From Octopus sinensis (lineage: Eukaryota): a stretch of DNA of 64,000 nucleotides. How positions within the stretch are numbered: the stretch's first letter is position 1; the number at the start of each line of letters is the position of its first letter. A model generated the notes under the pieces. The model ran no database searches. It saw nothing but the letters and a program-made list of their open reading frames with translations, and was not told where the DNA came from. Both the position numbers and the translations under genes were made by a program. The stretch covers positions 41,354,001 through 41,418,000 of the forward strand of contig NC_043012.1 of the NCBI RefSeq assembly GCF_006345805.1, written 5' to 3'. Of the stretch, positions 53,241 to 63,255 are shown piece after piece.

Positions 53241-56200
53241 TCATCGCACTGGAATTTCAACGTCTCTCAGATCAGTTTTATCACCATGATTGTCTTCTTT
53301 CGCTGTTGAACTCATTAATCTTTGAGAATTCTCAATGGCATCACCAGAATGTGACAATGTGTCAGCATGTTTTTCGTACGGGTTCTCGATTTTTCCTTTA
53401 TTAACACGTACAGCGTTAATTTTTCCTTCTTTGAACTTATGTGAAGAGGGTTGTGACGAAGATCTTCGCGATATCACTTTGGATGTGAGATCGGTTTTAC
53501 TCAACCCTAGTGAATTCTGTTCTCCATAATCAGTTCTATTTGTGTCTTTAAAATTATTAATGCTATCACTTTTCATCGGTAAAGTATATAAAACATTTAA
53601 CGGCATATGAAGATTTTTTTTAGATAATTTCTTAGAGGGCTTAACTGAATTTGAGGGATTATGGGCATTTGGTAACTCTATGACTGGGGACGATGGATCT
53701 TGAATTCCTAAATACCGTTTTACTAACATTGTATGGCTGAAGTTCCGTTTATGTAGAGAAATCGTATTAGAAGGTTTTGCTGCCGTACGTTTAAACTTTT
53801 GGCGCCTTTTAGCAGCAAACTTACGATTAGCAGTTAAGTAATTTCTACCTACAATTCGTTTACCAACAAATAAGGGATCCTCATCTCGTTTATCTGATAA
53901 CAAGGTATATCGACTCTGGGGATATTTAATTGTTTTACTTACAAAAGAAGGCCCTGGATATCGCTTAATCCCAAGTAAAAAATTTGACCGCGAACGCGAA
54001 ATTTTATCTGCAGAAGATTCTTCATTTCTTCTAAAAATAGGTTTATTTCTAGTTACAGATTCTAACTCCCGTTTGTCCTTAGATACTTGATGATCGACTT
54101 TTAGAGAATTTTTGTTGTGTGTAACTAAATTCATAAGGCGCAATTTTCGTTTTCTTACAAGACCAGGATTGTACTTTGACTTACCTATAACATATTGGTA
54201 AGGTCTATTTCCAGAATGGGTCCCACTAAACCCTCCTTTACTGAGTAATTCTGTGATGTGCTCACGTTTGCCAACGAACAAAGGATTTTTCTCTCGTTTA
54301 CCAGAAAACATAGCATCTCTCTCTCTTTTACCGACAAACATGGGATCCTCTCGTTTACCGACAAACACTGGATCTTCTCTTTTACCTATAAACATGGGAT
54401 CCTCTCTTTTACCGACAAACATAAGATGTTCTCTTTTACCAACAAACATAGGGTTTTCTCTTTTACCCACAAACATAGGATCTTCTCTTTTACCGTCAAA
54501 CAAGGGATCATCTCTTTTACCAACAAACATAGGATTTTCTCTTTTACCGACAAACATAGGCTCTTCTCTTTTACCTATAAACATGGGATCTTCTCTTTTA
54601 CCGACAAACATGGGATCTTCTCTTTTACCGATGAACATGGGATCTTCTCTTTTACCAACAAACATGGGATCTTCTCTTTTACCGACAAACATAGGCTCTT
54701 CTCTTTTACCGATGAACATGGGATCTTCTCTTTTACCTATAAACATGGGATCCTTTCTTTTACCGACAAACATAGGCTCTTCTCTTTTACCTATAAACAT
54801 GGGATCTTCTCTTTTACCGATGAACATGGGATCTTCTCTTTTAACAACAAACATGGGATCTTCTCTTTTACCGACAAACATGGGGTCTTCTCTTTTACCG
54901 ATGAACATAGGATCCTCTCTTTTACCTACAAACATAGGATCTTCTCTTTTACCGACAAACATGGGATCTTCTCTTTTACCAACAAACATGGGATCTTCTC
55001 TTTTACCAACAAACATAGGCTCTTCTCTTTTACCAACAAACATGGGATCTTCTCTTTTACCGACAAACATAGGTTCTTGTCTTTTACCGATGAACATAGG
55101 ATCTTCTCTTTTACCTATAAACACGGGATCCTCTCTGTTACCGACAAACTTGGGATCTTCTCTTTTACCGACAAACACGGGATCTTCTCCTTTACCGACA
55201 AACATAGGCTCTTCTCTTTTACCGATGAACATGGGATCTTCTCTTTTACCAACAAACATAGGATCTTCTCTTTTACCTATAAACATTGGATCTTCTCTTT
55301 TACCGACAAACATGGGATCTTCTCTTTTACCGACAAACATGGGATCTTCTCTTTTACCGACAAACATGGGATCTTCTCTTTTACCTATAAACATGGGATC
55401 TTCTTTTTTACCGATGAACATTGGATCTTCCCTTTTACCAACAAACATGGGATCTTCTTTTTTACCAATGAACATAGGATCTTCTCTTTTGCCAACGAAC
55501 ATAGGATCTTCTCTTTTACCGACAAACATAGGATCTCTTTTACCAACGAACATAGGATCTTCTTTTTTACCGACAAACATGGGATCTTCTCTTTTACCTA
55601 TAAACATAGGATCTTCTCTTTTACCGACAAACATAGGATCTCTTTTACCAACGAACATAGGATCTTCTTTTTTACCGATAAACATAGGATCTTCTCTTTT
55701 ACCAACAAACATGGGATCTTCTCTTTTACCAACAAACATGGGATCTTCTCTTTTACCAACGAACATAGGATCTTCTTTTTTACCGATGAACATGGGATCT
55801 TCTCTTTTACCCACAAACATGGGATCCTCTCTTTTACCGACAAACATGGGATCTTCTTTTTTACCGATGAACATAGGATCTTCTCTTTTACCGACAAACA
55901 TGGGATCTCTTTTACCAACAAACATAGGCTCTTCTCTTTTACCGACAAACATGGGGTCTTCTCTTTTACCGATGAACATAGGTTCCTCTCTTTTACCTAC
56001 AAACATAGGATCTTCTCTTTTACCTATAAACATGGGATCTTCTCTTTTACCTATAAACATGGGATCTTCTCTTTTACCGACAAACATGGGATCTCTTTTA
56101 CCAACAAACATAGGCTCTTCTCTTTTACCGACAAACATGGGGTCTTCTCTTTTACCGATGAACATAGGTTCCTCTCTTTTACCTACAAACATAGGATCTT

Positions 56201-58411
56201 CTCTTTTACCTATAAACATGGGATCTTCTCTTTTACCTATAAACATGGGATCTTCTCTTTTACCGACAAACATGGGATCTTCTCTTTTACCGACAAACAT
56301 GGGATCTTCTCTTTTACCGACAAACATAGGATCTTCTCTTTTACCGACAATCATGGGATCTCTTTTACCGACAAACATGGGGGCTTCTCTTTTACCGATG
56401 AACATAGGATCCTCTCTTTTACCTACAAACATAGGATCTTCTCTTTTACCGACAAACATAGGATCTTCTCTTTTACCAACAAACATAGGATCTTCTCTTT
56501 TACCGACAAACATCGGATCTTCTCTCTTACCAACAAACATGGGATCTCTTCTTTTACCGACAAACATCGGATCTTCTCGTTTACCAACAAACATAGGCTC
56601 TTTCTCTCGTTTACCAACAAACATATGACTTTCTCTTTTACCGACAAACATGGGATCTTCCCCTCGTTTACCCACGAACATAGGATCCACCCCTCGTTTG
56701 CCAACGAATACAGGATCTTCCTCTCGTTTACCGACAAACACTGGATCCTCCTCTCGTCTACCGATAAACATAGGATCTTCTCGTTTCCTGACAAACATAG
56801 GGTTCTTCTCTCGTTTACCCACAAACATTGGATCGTCTCGTTTACCTACAAACCTAGGATTTCTTTTACCGACAAACATAGGCTCTTTCCCCCGTTTACC
56901 GATAAACATTGGATCTTCACGTTTACCAACAATCATAGGCTCTTTCTCTCTTTTACCAACAAACATTGGATCTTCATCACGTTTACCAACAAACATAGGT
57001 TCTTTCCCCCGTTTCCCGACAAACATAGGATCTTCTCGTTTACCGACAAACACAGGATCATCCTCTCGTTTTCCAACAAACATGGGATTTTCCTCACGTT
57101 TACCGACAAACATTGGATCCTGCTCTCTTTTACGACCAAATACAGTCTCCCTGGAAAATGGTGCAACGAAAGCTGAGGGAAATGACGCCGGCTTTTGTTT
57201 TCCCGTTAAAAACGTATCGTTATTTCGTAAAGAACGAAATATTAGATCCGGTTCATGTATATTAGTGTATACAGATCTTGAATTTCGCTTTCTGGGAAAT
57301 AAGGGATGATCGTTTTGTCGTTTGCCTGCCGATACAGAATCATAATGAACTCGTTTGCTTATAATAATGGGATCATCTGGTTTGTTTAAAAACGTGTGAT
57401 CCGGATATTGTTTTCCTCCAAATAAGGGCTCACCATGGAATGGTTTGCCTGTATATATTACATTATCATCGTATATGGGATCGCCTGGCTTGTTTGATAT
57501 GTCCTGGTCAAGATAATCATGTGTAGGTAACTGATTAATATAACCTCTTTTTCCTACAAATAAGGGGTCATCATCTCGTTTGCCTACAAAAAGAGGATCA
57601 TCATCTCGTTTGCCTACAAATAAAGGAGTTTCTAGCTTTTGGTCATGATAATTCTGTTTTCTTCTAAATAATGGAACTTGTATACTTGCTAACAAGGGAT
57701 TTTCCTCCGTACGTCGTTTGTTTACAAATAACCGATGGAGTGAATTCTCAACGGAGAGAGGGTATTCACTCCTTTTGCCTACAAACATGGGATCTTCGTC
57801 CCTTTTACCTACAAACATGGGATCTGGATTTCGTTTACCAACAAAAAAGGGATCTGAATCTCGTTTACCAACAAAAAAGGGGTCTGGATCTCGTTTACCT
57901 ACAAAAAGGGGGTCTGAATCTCGTTTGCCTAGAAAAAAGGGTTCTGAATGTCGTTTACCTACAAAAAACGGATCTGGGTCTCGTTTACCAACAAAGAAAG
58001 GGTCTGGGTCTCTTTTACCTACAGAAAAAGGGTCAGGATTTCTCTTCCTTATATATAAAGTGTTTGGATCCCTTTTACCAACGAAGATGGGGTCTGGATC
58101 CCGTTTACCGACAAATGAAGTGTCTGGATCCTTTTTACCTACAAAGAATGGATCTGGAACCCGTCTACCAACAAAAAGGTGGTCCCGACCCCGTTTTCCT
58201 ACAAAAAAAGGATCTTGATCCCTTTTCCCCACAAAAAATGGATCTAGGTCCCGTTTTCCCACAAAAAATGGATCTGGGTCCCGTTTTCCTACAAAAAAAG
58301 GATCTGGATCCCTTTTATCTATAAACATGGGGTCTGGATCTCGTTTATCAACATATAAATGATGTTCGTCGTTCCGATTACCTAACAACATTGTGTCCGG
58401 ATCCTGTTTAT
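53241..58411 (-). CDS. Exon C (last coding exon) of a neuropeptide precursor: giant PxFVamide / Mytilus-inhibitory-peptide-type array
   Basis: Uninterrupted frame with roughly 120-130 units such as EDPMFVGKR, EDPMFIGKR and DPDPFFVGKR (Gly amide donor plus dibasic site). Strong acceptor CTCCACACTTTCTTTGCAG|AT at 58412/58411, phase 1. Stop TGA at 53243-53241. PMFVamide is the C-terminus of the Mytilus peptides GSPMFVa and GAPMFVa. Confidence 0.93.
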
Positions 58412-62739: not shown

Positions 62740-62821
62740 CGATGAGATGCCCATTCTTGACCTGTCCCCAAACTGAGGCAGATAGAATTACCACAATGTA
62801 CACAGACAAGTAGATCCTCAT
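62740..62821 (-). CDS. Exon A coding part: signal peptide of the neuropeptide precursor (not in the ORF track)
   Basis: ATG at 62821 gives MRIYLSVYIVVILSASVWG|QVKNGHLI plus one G: basic n-region, hydrophobic h-region and a V-x-G cleavage site. Donor G|GTATGT at 62740/62739 is phase 1, matching both downstream acceptors. An upstream acceptor TTGTCTTTGTTTTCTTTTATTGCAG| at 62850/62849 implies a further non-coding 5' exon. Confidence 0.85.
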
Positions 62822-63255
62822 TTCTAATGTAATTTGCTGCTTGAAGCTTCTGCAATAAAAGAAAACAAAGACAAGGTAAGTAAATTCATCAATTTCTCAA
62901 GTCTATATGTGTATATATATATATATATATATTTATGTATGTATGTATATATATATATATATATATATATATATATATATATATATATATATATATATGT
63001 AAATATATGTATGTATATATGTATATACGTATACATACATATATATATATATGTATATATTATATATGTATATGTATATCTATATATATATAGTGAATAT
63101 ATAAATAATTCCAGAAGATTGATAGAGAGAATGAGAGAGAGAGAGAAAGAGAGAAAGAGAGAGATGAAATGCTCATTGTATAATAAATATGAAAAGTAAT
63201 ATGTTAAATCTCATGTTCGAAATAATCAACGAGTGTATATATACATACACACATA

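Follow-up and report, generated by a model that had tools for sequence, protein, structure and literature searches.

One signal-peptide exon serving two neuropeptide arrays, EFLamide and PxFVamide, at a single octopus locus with inverted exon order

In a 64-kb stretch of the Octopus sinensis genome (NCBI RefSeq assembly GCF_006345805.1, contig NC_043012.1, positions 41,354,001 to 41,418,000; hereafter the window), we found one neuropeptide gene in which a signal-peptide exon (A, 62849-62740) is followed by an EFLamide exon (B, 60508-59861) and then by a large PxFV/Iamide exon (C, 58411-53241). The FV and EFL arrays were confirmed to lie at one locus, with one signal-peptide exon and compatible intron phases, and homology at the sequence level identifies the gene as the octopus orthologue of the spiralian FVamide/EFLGamide gene, which is MIP/fulicin in molluscs (MIP, Mytilus-inhibitory peptide). 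All gene features are on the minus strand, and positions refer to the 64-kb window. Lengths are in nucleotides (nt) or amino acids (aa), UTR denotes an untranslated region, and a slash marks a splice or cleavage boundary. The features of the gene, in the order in which they are transcribed, are as follows.

62740 to 62849, minus strand: exon A, with the acceptor ...ttattgcag/ before 62849, ATG at 62821 and coding sequence 62821-62740
60509 to 62739, minus strand: intron 1, rich in microsatellites, namely (TA)n, (GATA)n and (CA)n
59861 to 60508, minus strand: exon B core, with the acceptor tttctag/AT at 60508, phase 1, G/AT giving Asp
59727 to 59860, minus strand: exon B continuation, encoding KNNLEMLDPRIWHNATETLAKLLDLKIWNTFRRKGIQFVLIGK-stop (TGA 59729-59727), taken as read-through in a preliminary description of this DNA
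59385 to 59726, minus strand: candidate 3'UTR of an EFLamide-only mRNA, with an ATTAAA signal at 59410-59405
58412 to 59384, minus strand: remainder of intron 2, of which the last ~150 nt 5' of the exon C acceptor are highly conserved
53241 to 58411, minus strand: exon C, with the acceptor tttgcag/AT, phase 1, G/AT giving Asp, and TGA at 53243-53241
52984 to 52989, minus strand: ATTAAA, candidate poly(A) signal of the FVamide mRNA, ~250 nt past the exon C stop

Exon A ends in a phase-1 donor, and exons B and C both begin at phase-1 AG/AT acceptors. By translation, joining A, B and C in frame gives a product of 1966 aa that is open throughout, joining A to C gives 1750 aa, and A followed by B with its continuation gives 287 aa, ending at the stop at 59729-59727. 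These three lengths had been predicted in the preliminary description and were recovered by retranslation, as was every exon coordinate, phase and the 648-nt length of B given there. The same description had proposed that the EFLamide and PxFVamide arrays lack signal peptides of their own and share that of exon A, and this is supported by the gene structure, by conservation and homology, and by a gene model in a second octopus: neither B nor C has a credible signal peptide, and that of exon A is both conserved and well shaped. The window holds no further FV- or EFL-type coding sequence, a search for relict FV/EFL exons in the rest of it gave nothing below E=0.1, and intron 1 is free of FV- or EFL-like coding relicts.

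Much of the evidence comes from comparison with O. bimaculoides, whose locus (CM046615.1) has the same three exons in the same order with identical splice sites. With divergence counted as mismatches plus gaps, the non-coding parts of the gene differ between the two species as follows.

61000-60509: intron 1, 3' part, 11.5% diverged
59726-59385: intron 2, stop to ATTAAA, 8.7% diverged
59384-58560: intron 2, remainder, 14.6% diverged

The last part of intron 2 (58559-58412) is identical at 145 of 148 positions, plus one gap column. The sole close database relative of the octopus gene is LOC128249494 of O. bimaculoides, a 389-aa fragment with the RefSeq name 'uncharacterized protein'. Adjoining it is an unnamed gene call that begins at the exon A ATG and ends at an assembly gap, and its 1246-aa model is exactly A+C to the gap (82+3656 nt), where inclusion of B would have given 1462 aa. 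The gap in question, 10 Ns at positions 9988-9997 of the O. bimaculoides locus, falls within the FV array and splits one gene into two (2184-11170), that is, the 1246-aa 5' part and the 389-aa 3' part, with exon B in neither product. Since only the longest product per gene is on record for this species, what can be said is that no long B-containing isoform is annotated there.

Exon A encodes the signal peptide MRIYLSVYIVVILSASVWG/QVKNGHLI and ends in the phase-1 donor ATCG/GTATGT after 62740. The peptide has Arg at position 2, a hydrophobic core of 13 residues (best 11-residue Kyte-Doolittle mean 2.75) and a V-W-G that fits the -3/-1 rule, and it is identical to that of O. bimaculoides at 27/27 aa, with 81/82 nt of the coding sequence identical. 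The coding part is preceded by 28 nt of 5'UTR downstream of an AG acceptor (62851-62850). A pyrimidine tract and CAG acceptor lie directly 5' of exon A and are identical in O. bimaculoides. Because exon A is preceded by an acceptor, the promoter and one or more non-coding 5' exons probably lie upstream, possibly past the window end at 64000. An FV precursor would obtain the signal peptide only via the A-C splice, for which the phases are compatible and for which there is an O. bimaculoides model of A+C length.

Exon B runs for 648 nt, a length divisible by 3, to the donor TTAG/GTAAGA (59861/59860), and it opens with an acidic spacer of 68 aa followed by tandem xMEFLGKR units. Dibasic cleavage is predicted to release peptides from 16 dibasic-flanked xMEFLG copies (11 PMEFL-amide, 3 (R)MEFL-amide, 1 SMEFL-amide and 1 GMEFL-amide), with a 17th and last copy standing before K-N. 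Tandem copies of x-x-E-F-[L/V]-G between dibasic sites characterize fulicin/EFL(G)amide precursors, and the MEFLGKR unit is identical to that of mytilid EFLG exons, which share the G/AT acceptor; the predicted exon B peptides are of the fulicin/EFLamide type, that is, thyrotropin-releasing hormone (TRH)-type. This likeness is limited to the peptide units, as the exon B spacer had no significant similarity to the Mytilus EFLG spacer. Between the two octopuses, 640 of 648 nt are identical, all 17 repeat units are intact in both, and the differences comprise 8 synonymous and 0 non-synonymous changes. As all differences are synonymous and the introns are more diverged, exon B is a coding exon under purifying selection.

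The stretch past the 59861 donor behaves like part of that exon. Its 134 nt are identical to O. bimaculoides at 131 positions with no indel, and this 2.2% divergence compares with 14.6% for most of intron 2 (Fisher p=1e-5). The reading frame closes with ...RRKGIQFVLIGK-stop (...IGK-stop), so that the predicted C-terminus, ...FRRKGIQFVLIGK-stop, is of the amidation type. An ending in xG or xGK before the stop is a feature of fulicin/EFL(G)amide precursors: xGK-stop endings occur in gastropod (P0001, P0097, P0119) and oyster-type (P0026, P0030) sequences, and known ends include ...YTEFIGK and ...PEFVGK in gastropods, ...QGEWVGK in the oyster type and ...GDWMG in mussel. The octopus tail is like these ends in form and unlike them in sequence. 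An ATTAAA lies 317 nt past that stop, and it and its flanks (31/33 downstream bases) are kept in O. bimaculoides; the interval 59726-59385 is less diverged than the rest of intron 2 (8.7% vs 14.6%, p=0.007). With its conserved tail, the xGK-stop and the conserved ATTAAA, exon B looks more like a terminal exon that carries a 3'UTR of its own than like a cassette. The preliminary description had instead presented B as a frame-symmetric 648-nt cassette; that part was not supported, given a tail that is conserved like a coding exon past the donor and ends in RRKGIQFVLIGK-stop, and no evidence for a hybrid product was found beyond the arithmetic of its frame.

A second phase-1 donor, ATCG/GTAAGT at 59735/59734, is stronger than that at 59861, contains the read-through stop within it and, like the first, is kept in O. 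bimaculoides. Among the 624 GT sites of the gene, 59735 ranked 4th, 59861 6th, the exon A donor 13th and 54185 1st in an approximate scoring with a donor weight matrix. Two minus-strand donor look-alikes were seen within exon C, TAG/GTAAGT at 54185 and TTG/GTAAGA at 56531. All four of the sites 54185, 56531, 59861 and 59735 are GGT-AAG, that is, Gly-Lys codons; such look-alikes are a by-product of the Gly-Lys needed for peptide processing, and the evidence for the 59861 donor is therefore weaker than it appears. The look-alikes in exon C could act as cryptic splice sites, or as traps that place false introns in gene prediction.

Exon C is 5.2 kb long, with an open reading frame of ~1722 aa made up of PxF[V/I]GKR units and, before the stop, a non-repetitive tail of ~330 aa that is 86% identical to LOC128249494. 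About 116 copies in it close with F[V/I]G followed by KR, KK or RR, and the peptides predicted from dibasic cleavage include EDPMFV-amide (36 copies) and EDPMFI-amide (24 copies). Its best named match was 'MIP-related peptides-like' of Gigantopelta aegis (E=5.7e-57), and further molluscan FV precursors also matched, with the likeness to named MIP-related precursors falling mostly within the repeats. With tandem, dibasic-flanked P-x-F-[V/I]-G copies and similarity to named MIP-related precursors, both hallmarks of MIP/PxFVamide precursors, exon C is a predicted MIP-type array, and an exceptionally large one. The ATTAAA at 52989 and its context are kept in O. bimaculoides. Two plus-strand open reading frames of 791 and 972 aa (54253-57176) were considered and rejected as genes, since they are a periodic (...LLPTNMGSS...) antisense mirror of the FV repeats. 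Pfam matches of the repeat arrays (PWWP_KDM3B, NUDIX-like, Vexin) were likewise set aside as artefacts of summation over repeats, as no single stretch passes alone.

The reading that we consider best, with a probability of about 0.6, is a gene with a shared signal exon and a choice of the calcitonin/calcitonin gene-related peptide (CGRP) kind between A-B' (EFLamide), where B' denotes exon B with its continuation, and A-C (FVamide). The common exon A, through its phase-1 donor, would join either of two phase-1 acceptors, so that an internal terminal exon B competes with the distal exon C. When A is joined to B', the mRNA would continue through 59861 to the stop at 59729-59727 and probably end at an intronic poly(A) site near 59385, yielding a 287-aa precursor of 16-17 xMEFL-amide peptides (fulicin/EFLamide, TRH-type) and a C-terminal ...FVLI-amide. 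When A is joined to C, exon B would be skipped and a 1750-aa precursor of ~116 PxFV/FI-amide (MIP-type) peptides made. The EFL precursor would then need an mRNA that ends inside what is otherwise intron 2, and the FV precursor would need the EFL exon to be skipped. In bivalves and annelids, where the FV exon comes first, EFLG is instead reached by skipping the FV exon or is carried out of frame in the 3'UTR; given the inverted exon order, the octopus mechanism must differ from theirs. Such a choice may amount to a neuron-specific switch between peptide systems.

Several points weigh against this reading. All three substitutions in the exon B tail are non-synonymous, and its conservation could stem from a splicing or UTR element instead of coding. 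With two strong donors in phase 1 (59861, 59735), B could still be spliced to C in frame, and the putative intronic poly(A) site is, as observed, a conserved hexamer. The A-C product of O. bimaculoides is a computed gene model that matches in span and length, and the reconstructed product of that species had no exact match on look-up. No octopus transcript, protein or peptide with exon B or any of the junctions was present in the databases searched. Homology searches and a full HMMER scan returned LOC128249494 and no cephalopod protein with exon B or the A-C junction, and none of the three predicted octopus products, the exon C open reading frame by itself or two O. bimaculoides reconstructions had an exact match in the collection.

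The best-surviving alternative is that exon B (648 nt, or 774 via 59735) is an optional in-frame cassette, with a substantial A-B-C hybrid made beside A-C. Both B donors are in phase 1, rank high among GT sites on the approximate scores above and are conserved, A-B-C is open for 1966 aa, and in Platynereis the EFLGa neurons are a subset of the FVa neurons (PMC3890597), all of which would suit a hybrid. However, GGTAAG arises from Gly-Lys, and similar or better 'donors' stand inside exon C (54185, 56531); use of 59861 would destroy the last EFL copy (...PMEFL/DKQ...) and drop the exon-like conserved tail. Moreover, the longest O. bimaculoides product is 1246 aa and not 1462, no long model containing B being annotated, and bivalve arrays are kept mutually out of frame. 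We regard this alternative as unlikely, and the cassette/hybrid detail is probably wrong. Rather more doubtful still is a joint reading in which the octopus lineage inverted the FV-EFLG order, exon skipping or frame shift became alternative terminal exons, and some neurons splice a hybrid precursor. Under that same doubtful reading the hybrid would co-package TRH-type and MIP-type peptides in fixed proportion; a hybrid in frame is possible in the octopus, whereas it is excluded by frame in bivalves and annelids.

It is highly improbable that the locus comprises two or three independent transcription units, with B translated from its own ATG (MSCVDLLCFFVFL/DYN..., ~60549) and C from its own start, so that exon A would belong to just one of these or to none. 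An in-frame ATG and a hydrophobic stretch (Kyte-Doolittle mean 2.70) do lie 5' of B and are kept in O. bimaculoides, and the A-B link is without RNA evidence. Nevertheless, MSCVDLLCFFVFL is the translated polypyrimidine tract of a textbook acceptor, it has no basic n-region, its fifth residue is Asp and the residue at -1 is not small, and on these grounds we rejected it as a start and signal peptide for exon B. The open reading frame before exon C (MKSANTKILHTFFA) is not hydrophobic (mean 0.50), the phase-1 G/AT acceptors that match a phase-1 signal-exon donor are common to Mytilus, and A is spliced to C in the recorded gene model. The weakest alternative, that B is a non-functional relic and the octopus makes an A-C FVamide precursor only, would fit the A-C-sized model that alone is recorded for O. 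bimaculoides and the failure of database searches to find any protein or contig containing exon B, but is very improbable for an exon with 8 synonymous and 0 non-synonymous changes over 648 nt, all 17 repeat units intact in both species, and 98.8% identity against ~85-91% in introns.

The window also has dense microsatellite and other low-complexity sequence, (TA)n, (CA)n and (GATA)n among it. One such region is 61000-62340, several of the tracts lying in intron 1, and the matching part of intron 1 in the O. bimaculoides assembly is an 867-N gap. Further regions of this kind lie at 1153-2046, 18316-18847, 25897-26380, 33333-33918, 39799-40833 and 51420-51812. About 0.7 kb past the stop of the gene, a short minus-strand open reading frame (52261-52518) ends in a poly-Gln/His run (CAA/CAG repeat) and is probably a microsatellite, not coding. 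A reverse-transcriptase fragment (39139-39717, minus strand; Pfam RVT_1, E=5.4e-17) is probably part of a decayed retroelement; the neighbouring open reading frames at 38417-38815 and 41128-41553 had no Pfam match.

With these results cephalopods join a conserved spiralian scheme, that of a single gene for both MIP-type FVamides and TRH-type EFLamides. We found no description of a cephalopod fulicin/EFLamide precursor in the searchable literature, and what is new here is this cephalopod orthologue, its inverted exon order and its exceptionally large FV array, rather than a new principle. With that order, the octopus must regulate the choice unlike oysters and worms, which makes the locus a natural experiment on the evolution of alternative processing in neuropeptide genes. 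The exact junctions, probe targets and predicted peptides (PMEFL-amide, EDPMFV/FI-amide and ...FVLI-amide) can be used in brain atlases, peptidomics and receptor deorphanisation, and mis-annotations were exposed in two public genomes.

The vertebrate gene CALCA has common 5' exons that carry the signal peptide, then an internal terminal exon, which has a poly(A) site to itself and competes with splicing to a distal exon, and calcitonin/CGRP processing yields two different peptide hormones in different cells. The octopus gene has no homology to CALCA, and the likeness holds only under the alternative-terminal-exon model, in which the octopus choice of poly(A) site is a prediction. Closer relatives of the exon B peptides are gastropod fulicin and arthropod EFLamide, which like those of the octopus come as tandem x-x-E-F-[L/V]-amide copies between dibasic sites. 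Among gastropod fulicin-gene-related precursors, one (P0001) contains KRFNEFVGKR, the fulicin sequence; the gastropod precursor ends in ...EF[V/I]GK-stop, and Achatina fulicin has a D-amino acid at position 2. A Sepia 'FLGamide' family was also considered and is orcokinin B, unrelated.

The preliminary description had suggested that FVamide and EFLGamide peptides are linked in annelid precursors, which is true of Platynereis and Capitella (PMC3890597) and also of the oyster (PMC8398477); the shared FVamide/EFLamide gene is a conserved spiralian architecture that was already known. In Platynereis, the FVa mRNA has a second, EFLGa-coding region past the stop, without a start or signal peptide; its authors saw no alternative transcript that is in frame and suggested read-through of the stop codon (Conzelmann 2013, PMC3890597). 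The same FVa/EFLGa structure is attributed to Capitella by Veenstra 2011 as cited in PMC3890597. Annelids thus have FV and then EFLG past a stop codon, whereas the octopus has EFL and then FV, and annelid peptides carry an extra Gly (EFLG-amide), whereas those of octopus and mussel are xMEFL-amide. As to receptors, EFLGa-type peptides are annelid TRH orthologues that specifically bind the annelid TRH-receptor orthologue (PMC8398477), activation of TRH receptors is reported for Platynereis EFLGa and in C. elegans in work cited by PMC8398477, and arthropod EFLa has been described as TRH-type (PMC7294237). A receptor for FV/FL-amides is known only in annelids and brachiopods (PMC8557429), and two receptor systems in molluscs are plausible, a separate molluscan FVamide receptor not being established (PMC8557429). 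By peptide type, the predicted EFLamides of the octopus may act on a TRH-type receptor.

In the oyster Crassostrea gigas, three alternatively spliced mRNAs are known from LOC105328755, namely MIP long, MIP short and fulicin, and they result from exon skipping or from use of an alternative 3' splice site (Mar Drugs 2021, PMC8398477). The oyster is like the octopus in making MIP-type PxFV/Iamide and fulicin/EFL-type precursors from one gene with a common 5' end, and its fulicin precursor, like the octopus EFL precursor, closes with a terminal amidated peptide plus GK-stop; the peptides are likewise linked to the TRH-type receptor family. It differs in having the MIP exon first, with fulicin in another frame within the 3'UTR of the MIP mRNA, whereas in the octopus the EFL exon precedes the FV exon and the two share one phase. 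At ~116 copies and 1750 aa, the FV array is also far larger in the octopus than in the oyster.

The mussel Mytilus coruscus allowed the comparison to be taken to the level of exon boundaries (CACVKT020006376.1, L012). Contigs from the Logan collection with xMEFLGKR (P0014), considered as squid or cuttlefish sequences, proved to be mussel by cluster membership and a 99.6-100% match to the M. coruscus genome, and another set (P0012) looks, by similarity only, like a related mytilid. Within the mussel gene, the signal exon ends in ACAG/GTAATG, a phase-1 donor; the FV exon begins CAG/GA in phase 1 and has an internal phase-2 donor, AAAAG/GTCAGT; and the EFLG exon begins TAG/AT in phase 1 with G/AT giving Asp, as in octopus B and C. 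Six RNA contigs (L006-L011), drawn from six sequencing runs, all have the FV donor spliced to the EFLG acceptor, with the FV frame stopping at the junction (AG/A TGA) and EFLG out of frame. A 401-aa gene model of this mussel (CAC5401040.1, P0076) forces FV and EFLG into one frame (...GSPMF/LILVIMLEEKDDLG...), and it is contradicted by the six contigs, in which the FV frame stops at the 46393>49271 junction (L012 43200-49778). With its internal donor unused, the mussel FV exon (L012 45858-46760; L002 50-568) reads on to its own stop and adds two FV-amide peptides, FVVPEFVGKR and FDTPFFVGRR; this extended exon would be a 'long' MIP form like that of the oyster. An FV-then-EFLG order, with EFLG out of frame or past a stop, is not found in either octopus species. 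Mussel and octopus thus differ in order, signal peptide-FV-EFLG in the former and signal peptide-EFL-FV in the latter, and have junction phases and MEFLGKR units in common. Bivalves and octopus have thus both kept the design of a shared gene, together with its intron phases.

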